DNA from: Eutreptiella sp. 'Long Island Sound 2002'
Taxonomy: Eukaryota > Protista > Euglenida
Reading direction: 5' to 3'
NCBI GenBank assembly: GCA_964036045.1
Contig: OZ038378.1
Span: forward strand, 170,624,001 to 170,688,000
DNA: 64,000 nucleotides
The notes beneath the pieces are model-generated. The model searched no databases. It worked only from the letters and a program-made list of their open reading frames with translations, and was not told where the DNA came from. A program made the translations under genes and the position numbers. Below are positions 11,843-37,164 of the stretch, one piece after another (the stretch's first letter is position 1; every line of letters starts with the position of its first letter).

Positions 11843-13959
11843 TTCATGGTCGTTTTGTGCATGCTATGCCTGCGTTGTGCATCTCATATGTGCATGTGCC
11901 GCAGGTTGCTTGAAATCCCTGCAAGACCATTCGCTCCGATAGGTTCCAAGGCGGTTGGTTATCCATCGTTCGCTCAGCCTTGCAACCGGAAAGTCAAGCA
12001 GCTCAACCCCAAGCAGGGGACCCCCCTCCCATATTTCCACAACCAACAGCATTGCATCGTTCGCGCAAACCAATGACACGGTCTCGGGACTGAGTTGTAA
12101 GGAACACGGCTGAGGGGTACATCAAATGGGTGATGGGATGGACCCAAGCCAGATCTGCCTCCTGGAGGTGCCCGGAGTCTACAACGCAATATTCCACAAC
12201 AGGTGCGCATCACCAATCAGCCAGGTAAACCGCACCAGTGAGAATTCAACGACCCGCCGATCTAACAAGCAGCACAACATGAAGAAGGGCACACACAAAC
12301 GGTGTGGCGCCGCCGGCATAGGCATTGTAGACTCGTGTCTTCGCACCGTAATTATATCTTTGTTCCTTTGTTTTGTTCGGTGTGGGGCTCCAAGGTGCTT
12401 TGTGGTCCAGGGATAGTGGTTTCATGCGCCATCTCTCATTTTGCCCCATTTTGCCCTATTTTGCCCCATTTTGCCAGAGGGGCTTTTGGAACAATGACCG
12501 GAGGGCACAAAAGCCTGGGATGCGTAGGATACTTCGGATGCTGGATAGACAGCAAACAAAAAAGAGCAATCAGCAGCAGTCCAAGCACCGTGCATCACGT
12601 GCAACGAAGAAACATTCAATGCCGCATAGCCCTGGCACCCAGAAACAAGAAGCATGCCCCGGCAATGCCCAGGACACACATACAATGAGGCTGCAGTGTG
12701 CGCTGGGGTTGCTGTGTGCACATGCAGAGACCCACAAATGAAATCCCCAACAACAGGGCCCTTTTGCCTGCTACCCTCAGAAATAGCCGAAGCACGTGCA
12801 ATTGGAGGCAGTGAGGCACAATCAAGGACGATACCGATAGACTGAATGCCCCCGCCTTGAGACACTTTCAGCCACCAGATCACATCTCTCAATGTTGCAA
12901 GCACACAGACACACACCCATGTCCAAGCCACGGATGCTGCCAGAGACTCTGGAGGGTGACCATCGTCGATTTATTATATGGCCAACCTACGCCTCCAGCG
13001 CCGTACTCATGACAATGCACTGTGAGAATTCCGCCGACAACCATCGTTGCTTGATGGCCAACCTACGGATGCCGGAGGGATGTTGACCACCGTCATCGAT
13101 TTACGGCTGAGCTACGGTCTTGCCCAAGCCGCAGCAGGCGTAAGGGATCGGATTAACTTGGGGCCTAATTTAAGGTGGTACCGATTTTGCTACAACCGCA
13201 TAAGACGAGGGTTGGGGGTTAAACTGTGGGGCTGAGGGACTCCTTCATTGCCATGTGCGTGTAAGCTACAGTAGGCGCCGTGACCCTGGCAGGGAGGGCA
13301 GCTGCACGAGAGGTGCGCCCAGAGGACCAAACAATACATGTCGGCGGCTCCGCTGCCTTACCGGAACTGTGGCCACGAGCCGCGTTTGAACTGATTTGTG
13401 GCCGCGGCTCCGCCGCATTTCCCGGACGAGTGGACAGTATTGTTGCCGGTGTGATGCCGGAGGGTGACGCGGGACCGTATACTTTTTCGTGGCGTGGACA
13501 TGGGAGGGGGGGGTATGTGGGTCCATTTCCTTGCATGCCATGAACAGTTGAGGGGTGGTCACCGAGGCACTTCATCGATGCGACCGATTCCTGTTTCTGA
13601 GCCATGGTACCGCAAGTGGGCCTGCCCCCGGGGGTGGGCGACATCGGACGGTGGCTCAGCCTGTTCCTCGCGACCCGCGTCCCCATGAGCGCGAAGGCGG
13701 GCACTCCTTCGGCCATACCAGTGCTGAGGCGGTGTGAGACGGGGTGTATGGGAAGAGATGGATGCGCACGCCCAAAATACGCGTGGCAGTCTTGTTCGGA
13801 CCAAGGGAAAGGGGGTCTGGGGTCCAGCGTTGTGGGGCAGTCGGACAGGACCACTGCACTGCACAGCCCCCCGCACGGATCCCACACACCGCGCCCCTCA
13901 CCGCGCACACCGCACACCACTGCACCGCGCACTCTTCGTGTGCTGCTCCTGCCCGATCG

Positions 13960-13980
13960 TTTTGAGTGTCTACCTTTTTG
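13960..13980 (+). other. Degenerate spliced-leader relic just upstream of the GH start codon
   Basis: TTTTGAGTGTCTACCTTTTTG compared with SL TTTCTGAGTGTCTATTTTTTTTCG: exact TGAGTGTCTA core plus a T-run, 8 nt before ATG 13989. Confidence 0.65.
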
Positions 13981-13988
13981 TGCGCGCG

Positions 13989-14726
13989 ATGGACAGAGCA
14001 CCAACTCTGGCGGTGCTCATCTATCTGCTGCTGCACGGCGTGGGCAGTTCCGGCAGCGCTACGACGTCCGGCCGCGGCCTGCTCCTGGACGGCACCCCGC
14101 GGTGGATGAAGGGCGTGACCTGGAATCCGGTCGCGGCGGGCGGCACCCACCCGGCGGACGTCGATTTCAGCGGCTTTGTGGCGCAGGACGCGGCGCTGAT
14201 GCGGGCCGCCGGCGTGAACGTGGTGCGCAACTATGAGCCGCTGCGCAACCCCAAAGTGCTGGACGTGCTGGCGGAGCACGGCATCTCGCTGATCGCGTCG
14301 GTGTACCCCTGGGGCGGCGCGGCCGTCACCGCCGTCGACGACATCGTCGCCGCCACGAAGGACCACCCCGCCGTCCTGATGTGGTACATCGGGAACGAAT
14401 GGAACTACAACGGGCTGTACGTGGGGCTCGATCTCAACGCCTCCACGGCGCGCGTCGCCGAGGTCGCCCGCCGCGTCAAGGCGCTCGACCCCTCGCGCCC
14501 GGTCGCGACCGTCTACGGGGAGATCCCCGACGTCGCGACGTTCGCGGCGCTCGCGGAGCCCATCGACCTGTGGGGCCTGAACGTGTACCACGGGGGCAGC
14601 TTCGGCAGCCTGTTCGACGACTGGCTGGTGCGGTCCGCGGGCACACCGCGGCCGATGTTCATCGCCGAGTACGGCGCTGACGCGTGGGACTCGCGTGGGG
14701 AGGGCAAGTACAATCCGCAGGCGCAA
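13989..14726 (+). CDS. Secreted clan GH-A glycoside hydrolase (GH2-like TIM barrel), exon 1 of 2
   Basis: Signal-peptide-like MDRAPTLAVLIYLLLHGVGSS. KGVTWNP, GVNVVRNYE, acid/base motif IGNEWNY and nucleophile motif IAEYGAD are present. Strong GC3 bias. GT donor at 14727, phase 0. Confidence 0.88.
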
Positions 14727-15911
14727 GTACTACACCCGTCCTCCCTCCCCTGCCCTAAACCCTCCCTCAAGGCCATCAGCGCGACGTGTCATTGCCCCCC
14801 CCCTACGAACCCCCTTTTTTTCGGCCGACAGTTGGGGGGATGGGACGCAGCGGTCCTCCCCCACTCCTCCATTTCAGCGGAGAAGGGGCCATAGCGATTG
14901 TGGGGTGGCTCCAGCAGGAACAGGCCTCGATATGAACCGGAGTACACAGGCCCCCCGGGCCCTCTTCTGTCAAGCTCCCCATAAGAAGCGCCGATGGACG
15001 GGTGAGTGGGGGATGCCATTCGTCCCCAGGCCCCGGGACGGCATCGTGTTACGCAAACCCGGATACCCGAGGCTGAGGCGGAGCAGTCTGAGTTGGTGTT
15101 CTTCCCGCGGCCAAGTGGCCAGCAAGGCCTGGGCCACATCCGTTTCCCCGAGTATAGTCTGCAGACCCTCTGCATCGGCGGTGTGCAACGGGCACATGTG
15201 GTTGACACACGTTAATGCACATGATAACGCGCACGTTAATGTTAAGGCGTGCCTCAATGTAAACGCGGTCAGGCACATGTGAAGGCGCCAGAGAGGGAAC
15301 GTTAGCGCGCAAGGCAAATTTTCCCCCTATTTTCCCCCGGTCTCCCTTATCTCCCCGGTTCTCATTTATGGTGCATCCATTTATTCATGTCTCAGACAGA
15401 GAAGTGTTCAGAGGCTGAGTGGTGCAAGAGTGGACCAAGTTCGCGGCCTACTGAACCGTGTAGTACAGGAAAGCAATAGTGTGTCATTTGTACTTGGGGT
15501 TCCTGGGCTCGAGGAGGGAGTAATGTTTGGGGTAAAGCATTGGGATGGACGGTTGGAACATCATAGCCTCTAAGTGCCTCAGAGTGGCAGCCCCAAAACT
15601 CCGTGGGCACCCAGAGGGACGTCCCTGAGGGGTCCACACCACTCCCCACATGGTACATCCGACCCCGAGTCATGCGTGCTGGTGACTGCACCCACCAATG
15701 CACCAGTAGACAACTTGCTAGCACGGGTGCACGAGGAGAGATTTGGATGCCGGGCGCATGGGGCAAACGTTACCTCAAGGCGCGCCCGACCATGTGTATG
15801 TTCATGCCCCCCCACCCTCCCCCTCTGCTGCCCCCCTCGCACCTCCTCCGGCGCCCCCTCCTGTTCCATCCCGCGCCCCATGTCACAGCCGCCGCCCCGC
15901 ATTCACCGCAG

Positions 15912-16298
15912 GCGCATGCCACAACGGCCCTCGCCGCGGAGATCGCCGCGCGGCCCGACGCATGCGTGGGCGGCATCATCTTTGAGCTGGCGGACGAGTG
16001 GTGGAAGGACCAGGCCGGCGCGCCGGACGTGCACGACGTTGGCGGCATCGCCCCCGGCTCGGGCCCCCCACCGGACGACGTGTTCAACGAGGAATGGTGG
16101 GGGCTGGTCGATGTCAATCGCACGCCGCGGCTCGCGTACTACGCGTACGCCGCGACACCCAATGCCACCGCGTCGCCCTCACCCCGGCACTCGCCCCCGG
16201 CGACGGGGGGGTCTGCGGCCTCGGTTCGGAGTCCCGTGCGGTGGCGGTGGAGCGCAACGGCATTCGGGCTGCTACTGCTGCTGTTGACGCATTGCTGA
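15912..16298 (+). CDS. GH2-like glycoside hydrolase, exon 2 of 2, with GPI-signal-like C-terminus
   Basis: AG acceptor at 15910-15911 in frame. GGIIFELADEWWK and FNEEWWGLV complete the barrel, followed by a Ser/Pro/Thr linker and hydrophobic tail AFGLLLLLLTHC*. Spliced product is 374 aa; intron 14727-15911. Confidence 0.85.
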   Translation, partial: AHATTALAAEIAARPDACVGGIIFELADEWWKDQAGAPDVHDVGGIAPGSGPPPDDVFNEEWWGLVDVNRTPRLAYYAYAATPNATASPSPRHSPPATGGSAASVRSPVRWRWSATAFGLLLLLLTHC

Positions 16299-18221
16299 TG
16301 CGGCTCCGGGCTCAACTCCATGGAAGTCCTGGATGTTTCTTTTTTTTCCTTCCTCTCGGGACGGCCTATGTGGCAGGAATCGTTGACCGATGGCCAACCG
16401 ACGCCGGTTGGCCGGGACCGCGATGCCGCGTATCAGACTCGCCACGAGCGTCCGGCACATAAGACGTGATCAGGAGGAGCCGGATCCTACTGAGTCGGAC
16501 ACGGCCCCAGCTGGTTCCTACTTGAGTGTCAGATGTGCCAAGAGCGGATCTTACTGAGTGACACACTGGTACTGGGCTGATTCTGAGCGAAACTCAGTTC
16601 CCCTGCCGGTGACCGGTGACAACAGGTTCTCGTCGGCTGGCGCTTTGTTGAGGTCCGGACGTGCCGGAGGCCATTCTGCCGACTTGTGGGCCACTGCATA
16701 TTTTTTGACCACTCTAAAGCGTTGGGGAGCCCCACGGAAGGGGTTATGCAGCCAATCTGCCCATTTATGCGCCACTGCGGATTTTGTGCCGGTGATTTTG
16801 TCCCGCATTGTGAAGCGTAGGGGACCCCCGAGACCGCACGGTTCTGTAGCCAATGTGCCCATTTGCAGGCCGGCTTGTTTTGTTTTTGAGGACAACTCCG
16901 CTGAGCTCTGGTTTCTTCTTTCATATTTTGCTCTGCTTTGGTTTGCTGCGTTGTGATTGACTATGCCATGCCATACTCTGCTACGCCCTGTGCTTTGGTC
17001 TGCGATGTTATGTCATGCCACGCTCTGCCCTGCGTAGCACAGTACACCAGAGCACAGGGCGTGGCATGGCAGAGCAGAACACAGCAGAGCACGCGGCAGC
17101 GCCGCATGGCGCGACATCACATGGCAGCCCAACACGGGGCAAAGCTCTCCTGGCCCTCGGAAATGGTCCAAAGCGCCTCGAGGAATTCTGGTGCACTGGG
17201 AGAACCACTTCAGATGTTATCGCGGTTTTGAGGCATTGCCGGTGCTGAGGCAGAGCGGGGCAGAGCAGAGCTGAGGTAGCAGAGTCCTTTGCGGGGTCCA
17301 GCGCAGGCCTGGGGACACGAGGGCTGCTGGTACAATGAGAACATTGCCTTTGGGTATCATTTCCGGGGCTGGGCATCAACTGCACCACCCGTGAACCTTT
17401 GATCGGACCCTCCTACGCAGCGCCTGCACCCTCCCAAACAGAAAGGCGCCAGCCATCATGTTTATGCGACTGTTCTTCTGCGCTAATTTGAACCAGCGGC
17501 GGAGGGCGGGGGGGGGGGGGGGGTATGCTGGCTTGGCCAGGGGCACCGTGCCCTCCTTGATTTCCATCCCTAGTGCAGCCGCAGTCCCTCCGACCCGCCG
17601 ATTCCGGGCGGGTTGTAACCGCGGGTCAACGTCTCGATGATATTGCCAACAACATGTTGGCAATATCATCGATTTGTTCACTCGGTTACTCGCGATTGCA
17701 ATTTTCCCCTCGGGAGGGGGCGTAGAACGGATGCCTTGTCCCCACGGGCTCTGGGATGGGCTGGGGCAGAGGTGCTAAGGCCCGGGCCACGGACAGTTCA
17801 GTGGCGACCGCACCAGCCTCTGGAGGGGGGCGTCACTTAAAGTCGTCCCGGAGTGACTGGATCGAACAGGCACTGGCTGCGAGCGACTCTCCTCCCCTCA
17901 ATCAAGAGGGGGGACGCCACACGAGGCATCGGGGCACAGGGGAGGCTGCTGATTGGGTGCCGGCCAGCGCGCAGTCGTCCGAGACGCCATCGCCCTCCCC
18001 CTGCACGACCCCTGGGCCTGAAAATCGGCCGCCAAATCCCATCCAAATCCGTGGCAGCACCTGTTCTTATCGCAACCTCCTGCCCAGTCCGGACAGCACT
18101 GATCAGTGGTCTGTCAATCCCGGTCAATGCGGTTGGCATCGCGGGCGCCTCCGCCTACAGCGGCCGGTATCTCCCAGCCGCTGGCCACGGCTGCCGCGCC
18201 CTCGAAGGGGGGCATCGCTGA

Positions 18222-24984: not shown

Positions 24985-25122
24985 TTCTGAGTGTCTATTT
25001 TTTTTCGAAAGGCGCCTAGCCTCAATGACACTATTTTCTGTTGTGGCCTGACGAGCTGTTTTGACAAGTGCCCTGTTTGCCTGCTATCGACAGTGGGTTC
25101 GGGTTTCTTGATCTCCTTCACA

Positions 25123-25124
<2 letters not shown>
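24984..25124 (+). mobile_element. SL-capped processed copy of the same short element, embedded in (TG)n
   Basis: TTTCTGAGTGTCTATTTTTTTTCG (24984-25007) matches the euglenid SL exon as recalled. It is joined to AAAGGCGCCTAGCC, not to the GT of an SL RNA intron. (TG)n lies on both sides. Confidence 0.85.
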
Positions 25125-37083: not shown

Positions 37084-37164
37084 GGTCGTTTGCCCGAGCG
37101 GTCAAGGGGTGGCACTCAAGTTGCCATAGTTTCGGCTGCGTGGGTTCGAATCCCACAGCGACCA
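37084..37164 (+). tRNA. tRNA-Leu(CAA), intronless, inside kinesin intron 4
   Basis: Folded by hand: acceptor GGTCGTT/AGCGACC, D-stem CCC/GGG, anticodon stem TGGCA/TGCCA with loop CT-CAA-GT, long variable arm, T-arm GTGGG-TTCGAAT-CCCAC, discriminator A. A T-run follows downstream. Confidence 0.93.

Follow-up and report, generated by a model that had tools for sequence, protein, structure and literature searches.

A glycoside hydrolase (GH) gene in a euglenid alga raises the question of how a gene can open like a reverse-transcribed, trans-spliced mRNA and yet contain an intron. The first-pass annotation had read it as a retroposed copy of a trans-spliced mRNA, marked by a spliced leader (SL) sequence before the start codon, and concluded that its intron was gained later. 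The window, by which we mean the whole stretch of 64,000 nucleotides analysed, is euglenid nuclear DNA from contig C1 of the assembly (G000; 2.28 Gb in total), positions 170.62-170.69 Mb. An Rfam search of the window returned a tRNA as its sole match. The GH locus lies at 170.6 Mb of this chromosome-scale contig, and the alga's own repeats flank and interrupt the gene. DNA contigs from short reads (four runs of one study) run across flank, exon and intron of the gene and match the window without differences at 13600-15522 and 15674-16504. Because of this agreement, the relic and both intron borders can be placed in genomic DNA. The GH gene is physically integrated in the alga's chromosome and is not contamination.

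Features of the GH locus and of the second SL copy in the window (positions counted from the first nucleotide of the window)
Feature	Position	Strand	Remarks
SL relic, minor 'CC' variant	13958..13984	+	23/26 positions match, one 1-nt insertion; variant defined from L045-L054
Exact 17-mer TGAGTGTCTACCTTTTT	13963..13979	+	common to relic and CC-variant SL copies
Putative 4-nt 5' UTR (CGCG)	13985..13988	+	gap between relic and ATG, read from sequence
Exon 1 of GH gene, codons 1-246	13989..14726	+	ATG at 13989
Content of exon 1			signal-peptide-like hydrophobic N-terminus (about aa 1-22), then GH2-TIM/GH158-like domain with GNEWN and AEYG motifs
11-nt direct repeat CCGCAGGCGCA, copy 1	14715..14725	+	pair straddles the splice sites
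Intron of GH gene, 1185 nt, GT..AG, phase 0	14727..15911	+	C-rich pyrimidine tract, CAG 3' end
Repeat fragment inside intron	14974..15138		shares 80% identity with a C1 copy
Two adjoining transposon fragments inside intron	15365..15740		families at 79-83% and 84-91% identity
11-nt direct repeat, copy 2	15906..15916	+	last 6 nt of intron and first 5 nt of exon 2
Exon 2 of GH gene, codons 247-374 and TGA	15912..16298	+	remainder of GH domain
3' part of exon 2			Ser/Pro-rich stretch, then hydrophobic C-terminal tail (probably GPI-signal-like or a membrane anchor)
Highly repeated element about 110 nt 3' of stop codon	16408..16700		limits the unique 3' flank
Exact canonical SL in DNA	24985..25008	+	(GT)n-flanked, no GT after

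Exon 1 matches Pfam PF02836 (Glyco_hydro_2_C; E=2.5e-14), and a profile of the homologues has a GH158 enzyme (PDB 9oro, 9.7e-14) as its best solved relative, followed by GH2 beta-glucuronidases; the similarity of the GH protein to GH158 is weak, at 54.7 bits. Both catalytic glutamate motifs (GNEWN and AEYG) are conserved. Judged by sequence, the protein is a clan GH-A glycoside hydrolase of the GH2 TIM-barrel/GH158-like type with a predicted activity. In 60 homologues, 90 columns are highly conserved; the GH protein keeps 87 of them, distributed over both exons, and this speaks for a functional gene.

The closest proteins, in collections that are poor in eukaryotes so that the absence of closer eukaryotic homologues weighs little, are bacterial, with 52-59% identity and lipoprotein-type N-termini. 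Among GTDB species, 276 loci encode relatives, mostly in Myxococcota. In a maximum-likelihood tree the GH protein falls inside a Myxococcota-rich bacterial clade of 71 rows (99% support), as sister to a metagenome-assembled genome of a marine member of the Myxococcota (SH-aLRT 91). This nesting implies that the gene came by horizontal transfer, and the donor was most likely a bacterium of the Myxococcota. With lipoprotein hydrolases of this phylum (e.g. Sandaracinus amylolyticus P0051), the identity of 52-59% extends over the catalytic domain and includes the GNEWNYNG and EYGADA motifs, the 87 of 90 conserved columns and PF02836. Homology to the bacterial proteins begins only at about residue 23. 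Where these have a lipobox signal and a long, low-complexity linker, the GH protein has a short hydrophobic N-terminus that resembles a signal peptide of eukaryotic type, a segment with no bacterial counterpart; it differs further by the Ser/Pro-rich stretch, the hydrophobic tail and a spliceosomal intron. N-terminus and C-terminal tail would presumably serve in targeting. A search of the 2.28-Gb assembly for a parent or paralogue found nothing above 38% identity, so that a loss of parental introns is not demonstrable. Tree, GTDB relatives and paralogue search agree in contradicting the term 'host gene', under which the locus had been described: the hydrolase is of bacterial type, was acquired horizontally and has no parent copy.

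The 21-mer that had drawn attention to the upstream region, TTTTGAGTGTCTACCTTTTTG, lies at 13960-13980, 8 nt 5' of the ATG at 13989. The full relic (13958-13984) is in sense orientation and stops 4 nt (CGCG) short of the ATG. Its 17-mer TGAGTGTCTACCTTTTT has 15 copies in 2.28 Gb, compared to about 0.3 calculated by chance, and 10 of the 11 other copies that were fetched have SL flanks. These ten are SLs with CC in place of TT; upstream of them stands CTTTC, CTTTT or CTCTC, downstream a T-run and then, in most, CG. In a semiglobal alignment to the CC-variant SL, 13958-13984 scores 18 of 26, while the minus-strand background in the window reaches a maximum of 9. The 10-nt core of the SL occurs twice in the window (0.07 expected), the second time in the exact SL at 24985-25008, and 19,650 times in the genome compared to 1,555 times for the reversed control. 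Thus, the core is far above chance, and the SL-like motif 8 nt before the ATG is confirmed on stronger grounds (17-mer, 23/26 match, alignment score) than had been claimed. On this sequence evidence the motif is a genuine relic of an SL.

In the DNA, the CC variant precedes no fewer than five unrelated sequences, one of them a transposon tail that bears the canonical SL elsewhere (L054 versus L018, L020 and L027). One CC copy, at C2:52,245,084, has GTACAC before and GTATAT after it, as in canonical SL-RNA genes. Copies on at least five unrelated sequences, together with one resembling an SL-RNA gene, indicate indirectly, from DNA, that the CC form is a natural minor SL variant which is probably used in trans-splicing in this organism. 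Since an SL is written in the DNA before the ATG, an SL-bearing RNA was reverse-transcribed at the GH locus. The relic itself is worn and its flanks are degenerate. Its upstream flank is CA-rich, unlike the (GT)n found at several other SL-capped copies.

The second SL copy of the window, at 24985-25008, is identical to the published SL of Euglena gracilis, TTTCTGAGTGTCTATTTTTTTTCG (PMC5654406, PMC6242988), and shows both the SL of this genome and the retroposition of SL-RNAs. Exact 24-nt SLs number 3309 in the genome. Of 30 that were sampled, seven have the intron start of a canonical SL-RNA gene, and one more (L001) looks like a gene; most of the remaining ones run into other sequences, in many of which an ATG follows within 0-29 nt, and at one sampled locus three SLs stand in tandem. 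One parent-copy pair is a lectin: the retrocopy consists of SL, 16 nt, ATG and an intact, intronless open reading frame of 434 aa with a C-type lectin domain, and the parent on C5 has at least 10 exons across 18 kb. Two SL-capped lectin copies are found on C1 (G000:C1:835319-836660 and C1:8185467-8186739), both uninterrupted, one intact and one decayed, and both are without any parental intron (at least nine lost). Searches of the own genome for the frequency of retained introns among SL retrocopies led to multi-copy families (L016 and L022 types) and not to single parents, so the comparison is confined to the lectin case. SL-mRNAs are retroposed in this genome. Like the GH gene, its other SL-capped copies (the lectins; 24985-25124 of the window) have a few nucleotides between the SL and the ATG or transposon tail. 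In contrast to the lectin-type copies, which carry an exact or nearly exact SL, are intron-free and in the lectin case have a multi-exon parent, the GH gene has a worn relic, no parent and an intron, which suggests an older event and further evolution.

When 14726 is joined to 15912, the product aligns without gaps to bacterial proteins across QAQ|AHA; the GT-AG intron of 1185 nt first proposed is therefore exact, and its removal gives a protein colinear with the homologues. Over its last 120 nt the intron is 54% C, and its terminal nucleotides are CAG. Conventional introns of E. gracilis have a C-rich pyrimidine tract, a CAG end and a GTGTG consensus at the 5' side, with a mean length of about 512 nt and a maximum of 8197 nt (PMC11170887). 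The GH intron resembles them in its GT..AG borders, C-rich tract, CAG, length within this range and unpaired ends; it departs from them in its 5' splice site, which is GTACT and not GTGTG, and in its demonstrable gain, since the relatives of its host gene are bacterial. Conservation of exon 2 suggests that the 1185-nt stretch is spliced out, and it is probably a conventional spliceosomal intron. Because the relatives are all intronless bacterial genes, the intron is a gain of the euglenid lineage whatever the SL says. A nonconventional euglenid intron was rejected on account of the GT..AG borders and because the ends, when co-folded, did not outdo shuffled sequences (z 0.05 to 1.1). An intron derived from an introner or transposon was likewise rejected, since no multi-copy element is co-terminal with the splice sites and both ends are unique: neither its first 264 nt nor its last 167 nt recur elsewhere in the genome, and all repeats lie in between. 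Read depth at 15365..15740 is about 30-100 times that of the flanks. The intron is not obviously young, because it contains three fragments that share 79-91% identity with other copies.

The 11-nt direct repeat CCGCAGGCGCA at the splice sites was considered as the target duplication of an insertion. Under that model the loop would originally have measured 9 residues; it measures 11 in the spliced product and 10-15 in about 170 homologues. The repeat is treated here as mostly a coding repeat (QAQA) plus 6 nt of coincidence or microhomology, and the junction sequence left after splicing is most likely the ancestral one.

Taken together, we consider it fairly probable that the locus holds a single-copy, probably functional, secreted or surface-anchored GH of bacterial (most likely Myxococcota) origin whose SL-mRNA was retroposed, the intron more likely having been gained after that. 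The transferred bacterial gene would first have gained its eukaryotic targeting ends and would then have been transcribed and trans-spliced with the minor SL variant. Reverse transcription and insertion of this SL-mRNA would have produced a locus that opens with SL, 4-nt UTR and ATG, and the original copy would have been lost. One conventional intron would have entered the middle of the catalytic domain, more likely after retroposition, and transposon fragments would later have inflated it. The pyrimidine tract and AG of the relic may act as a new trans-splice acceptor, in which case the mRNA would read SL and then TGTCTACC.... The gene is probably expressed and spliced today. That it derives from a retroposed trans-spliced mRNA, as originally proposed, stands insofar as an SL-bearing RNA was reverse-transcribed here; that the template was the whole GH mRNA is presumed.

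The order of retroposition and intron gain is the point on which the strongest alternative turns. An SL-capped but incompletely cis-spliced pre-mRNA may have been the template, the intron then having been gained in the original transferred copy and being older than the retroposition; we regard this as rather unlikely. For tubG of Euglena the SL can be added before cis-splicing takes place, and rbcS transcripts have been detected that bear the SL but still contain the first intron (PMC6221363). Retention of parental introns is frequent in the SL-tagged retrogenes of dinoflagellates (PMC5585692, PMC6050394), and the GH intron is old enough to have received three transposon fragments. Since the SL can precede cis-splicing and dinoflagellate retrogenes keep introns, a later origin of the intron does not follow from the relic, contrary to what had been concluded for this locus. 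Nor is the idea of a 'recent' gain supported, with three transposon fragments (79-91% identity) in the intron and a worn relic before the ATG. Both orders need exactly one intron gain. The earlier gain adds one unusual step, the incompletely spliced template, while both lectin retrocopies shed all parental introns (at least nine); a gain after retroposition is therefore moderately favoured over retention.

It is also conceivable, but improbable, that the 5' end is chimeric, the relic, with or without the signal-peptide segment, having been supplied by a different retroposed RNA or by partial conversion of the 5' end through a cDNA, while GH core and intron were never retroposed. Bacterial homology that starts only at about residue 23 fits such an origin, and since the signal-peptide segment has no traceable origin, a chimeric 5' end keeps a place among the explanations. 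The genome offers about 20,000 copies of the SL core as possible landing sites. Hallmarks of retroposition are missing at the 3' side: no A-run of 7 or more was found within 5.7 kb downstream as a poly(A) relic, and in the search for a target-site duplication the longest word common to the upstream flank and 9.7 kb downstream was 9 nt, which is chance level. Both negative results, together with the missing parent, weigh against a simple retrogene as well. Against a chimera, the 5' UTR and signal-peptide segment have no counterpart elsewhere in the genome; a search with these and the 5' flank matched only a CA-rich low-complexity stretch. Moreover, an SL 4 nt before the ATG of a 246-codon exon is normal SL-mRNA geometry, as seen in other copies, and chance juxtaposition over all genes was roughly estimated at a few cases genome-wide.

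That the locus is a decaying, silent pseudogene and the 1185-nt stretch a disruptive, unspliced insertion appears very improbable. It would agree with the weak 5' splice site, with the transposon fragments in the insertion and with the results of the transcript searches. In the run search for the locus none of the runs was recorded as RNA, and the four holders were DNA-like contigs that contain the intron and no intron-skipping joint; word searches with exon 1 and exon 2 found only the unspliced open reading frames of the window and no junction-spanning, transcript-derived protein. On the other hand, both exons are open, and the two catalytic glutamate motifs are intact, as are 87 of the 90 conserved columns; joining at the GT..AG borders recovers the reading frame and, residue for residue, the homologous sequence, and the 3' end with its C-rich tract and CAG is typical of E. 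gracilis. Finally, a chance likeness to the SL, or a mere pyrimidine tract with an AG acceptor, which the TTTTGAG part taken by itself and the degenerate flanks might recall, is effectively refuted by the 17-mer exact to an SL variant (about 0.3 expected per genome; 10 of 11 other fetched copies SL-flanked) and by an alignment score twice the background of the window.

Returning to the reading that we prefer, a retroposed SL-mRNA with a probably later intron, the mechanism is that known from dinoflagellates, where DinoSL-tagged retrogenes have been described as 'mRNA recycling' (Slamovits and Keeling, 2008, as reported in PMC5585692; PMC6050394; PMC12014239). In both, a relic of the organism's own SL stands in the DNA directly before the coding sequence and marks a reverse-transcribed, trans-spliced mRNA, introns can be present, and a parent is missing; DinoSL retrogenes are mostly 'orphans' without an identifiable parent (PMC6050394). 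The GH gene differs in lineage, Euglenozoa, and in its SL. Its relic is single, nearly full-length and of a minor SL variant, whereas dinoflagellates have stacked, 5'-truncated relics. It is also bacterial in origin, so its intron cannot be ancestral, and it is known here from DNA alone.

The proposed mRNA recycling of host genes is borne out for the genome, which retroposes SL-mRNAs as the lectin demonstrates, but the GH gene itself is not an ordinary host gene. A literature search found no paper on SL-relic-tagged retrogenes in Euglena, and the SL is nowhere mentioned in the chromosome-level genome paper. What is new is that the retroposed gene has bacterial ancestry, that its tag is a minor SL variant and that its conventional intron was demonstrably gained. 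As a tentative generalization, for which we would claim somewhat less than even chances, Euglena may recycle trans-spliced mRNAs at large scale like dinoflagellates and in doing so also relocate and consolidate horizontally transferred genes; tagged retrogenes may gain introns de novo, with the pyrimidine tract and AG of the relic as new trans-splice acceptor. If this is true, SL relics would allow intron gains to be dated throughout the genome of a lineage with unusual introns.

SL relics are a tag of retroposition that is independent of introns and that only dinoflagellate studies have exploited so far. The GH gene combines three events: bacterial transfer, retroposition and intron gain. The gain is certain because the relatives are bacterial, and a certain gain is rare among conventional introns, which makes this one useful for studying intron birth. 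A census of SL-tagged genes could reveal the share of RNA-mediated duplication in the gene content and in the size of this 2.28-Gb genome.

Both splice sites of the intron in the glycoside hydrolase (GH) gene are spanned by an exact 11-nt direct repeat, CCGCAGGCGCA, located at window positions 14715-14725 and 15906-15916. The spacing of the two copies equals the intron length plus 6. A coding repeat for QAQA accounts for part of this repeat; the other 6 nt could be due to chance or represent microhomology stemming from an insertion event. Downstream of the GH gene lies a highly repeated element; many of its other copies have nothing that corresponds to window positions ~16415-16620, suggesting a nested insertion.

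Spliced leader (SL) sequences were also found in the DNA at other loci of the 2.28-Gb assembly (G000). Locus L011 contains three SLs in tandem: one matches exactly, another is full-length with a single change, and the third is the 5'-truncated AGTGTCTATTTTTTTTCG. After a further 14 nt comes an ATG that starts an open reading frame of 89 codons. This triplet looks like the product of several rounds of retroposition and renewed trans-splicing. SL-capped, intronless copies of a lectin gene are present as well; one of the two is intact and encodes 434 aa, the second is 96% identical and contains two TGA stops.

Features located in the window and in the assembly (G000)
Feature	Location	Strand	Details
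tRNA gene	window 37084-37164	+	Rfam RF00005, 54 bits
Highly repeated element	window 16408-16700		starts ~110 nt past GH stop codon; read depth 50-70x flanks
Tandem SL array (L011)	C1:1041249-1044272	minus	DNA sequence
SL core 10-mer pairs (examples)	C1:4759965/4774216, 5601348/5615577, 7305092/7319339, 9469179/9483411
C-type-lectin-domain gene (parent)	C5:27472108-27490565		at least 10 exons
SL-capped intronless lectin retrocopy (L010/L151)	C1:835319-836660
SL-capped intronless lectin retrocopy (L152/L153)	C1:8185467-8186739

Pairs of the 10-nt SL core on the same strand, approximately 14.2 kb apart, recur on contig C1, pointing to a long element or repeat unit that has the motif at each end. 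The minor SL form in which TT is replaced by CC is followed by GTA at a single locus genome-wide (L046/L163, C2:52245084). This locus and the canonical SL-RNA genes have GTACAC upstream and GTATAT downstream in common and are divergent beyond; the CC variant may have its source gene here.

The genome contains a family of open reading frames of about 830 aa, with at least 80 copies that are 93-99% identical; the first 499 aa gave no Pfam match. In one copy (L022, C1:11649569 onward) the 5' start is an exact SL in the DNA, with the ATG 3 nt further on. This suggests that the family is a retroelement with a trans-spliced RNA intermediate.
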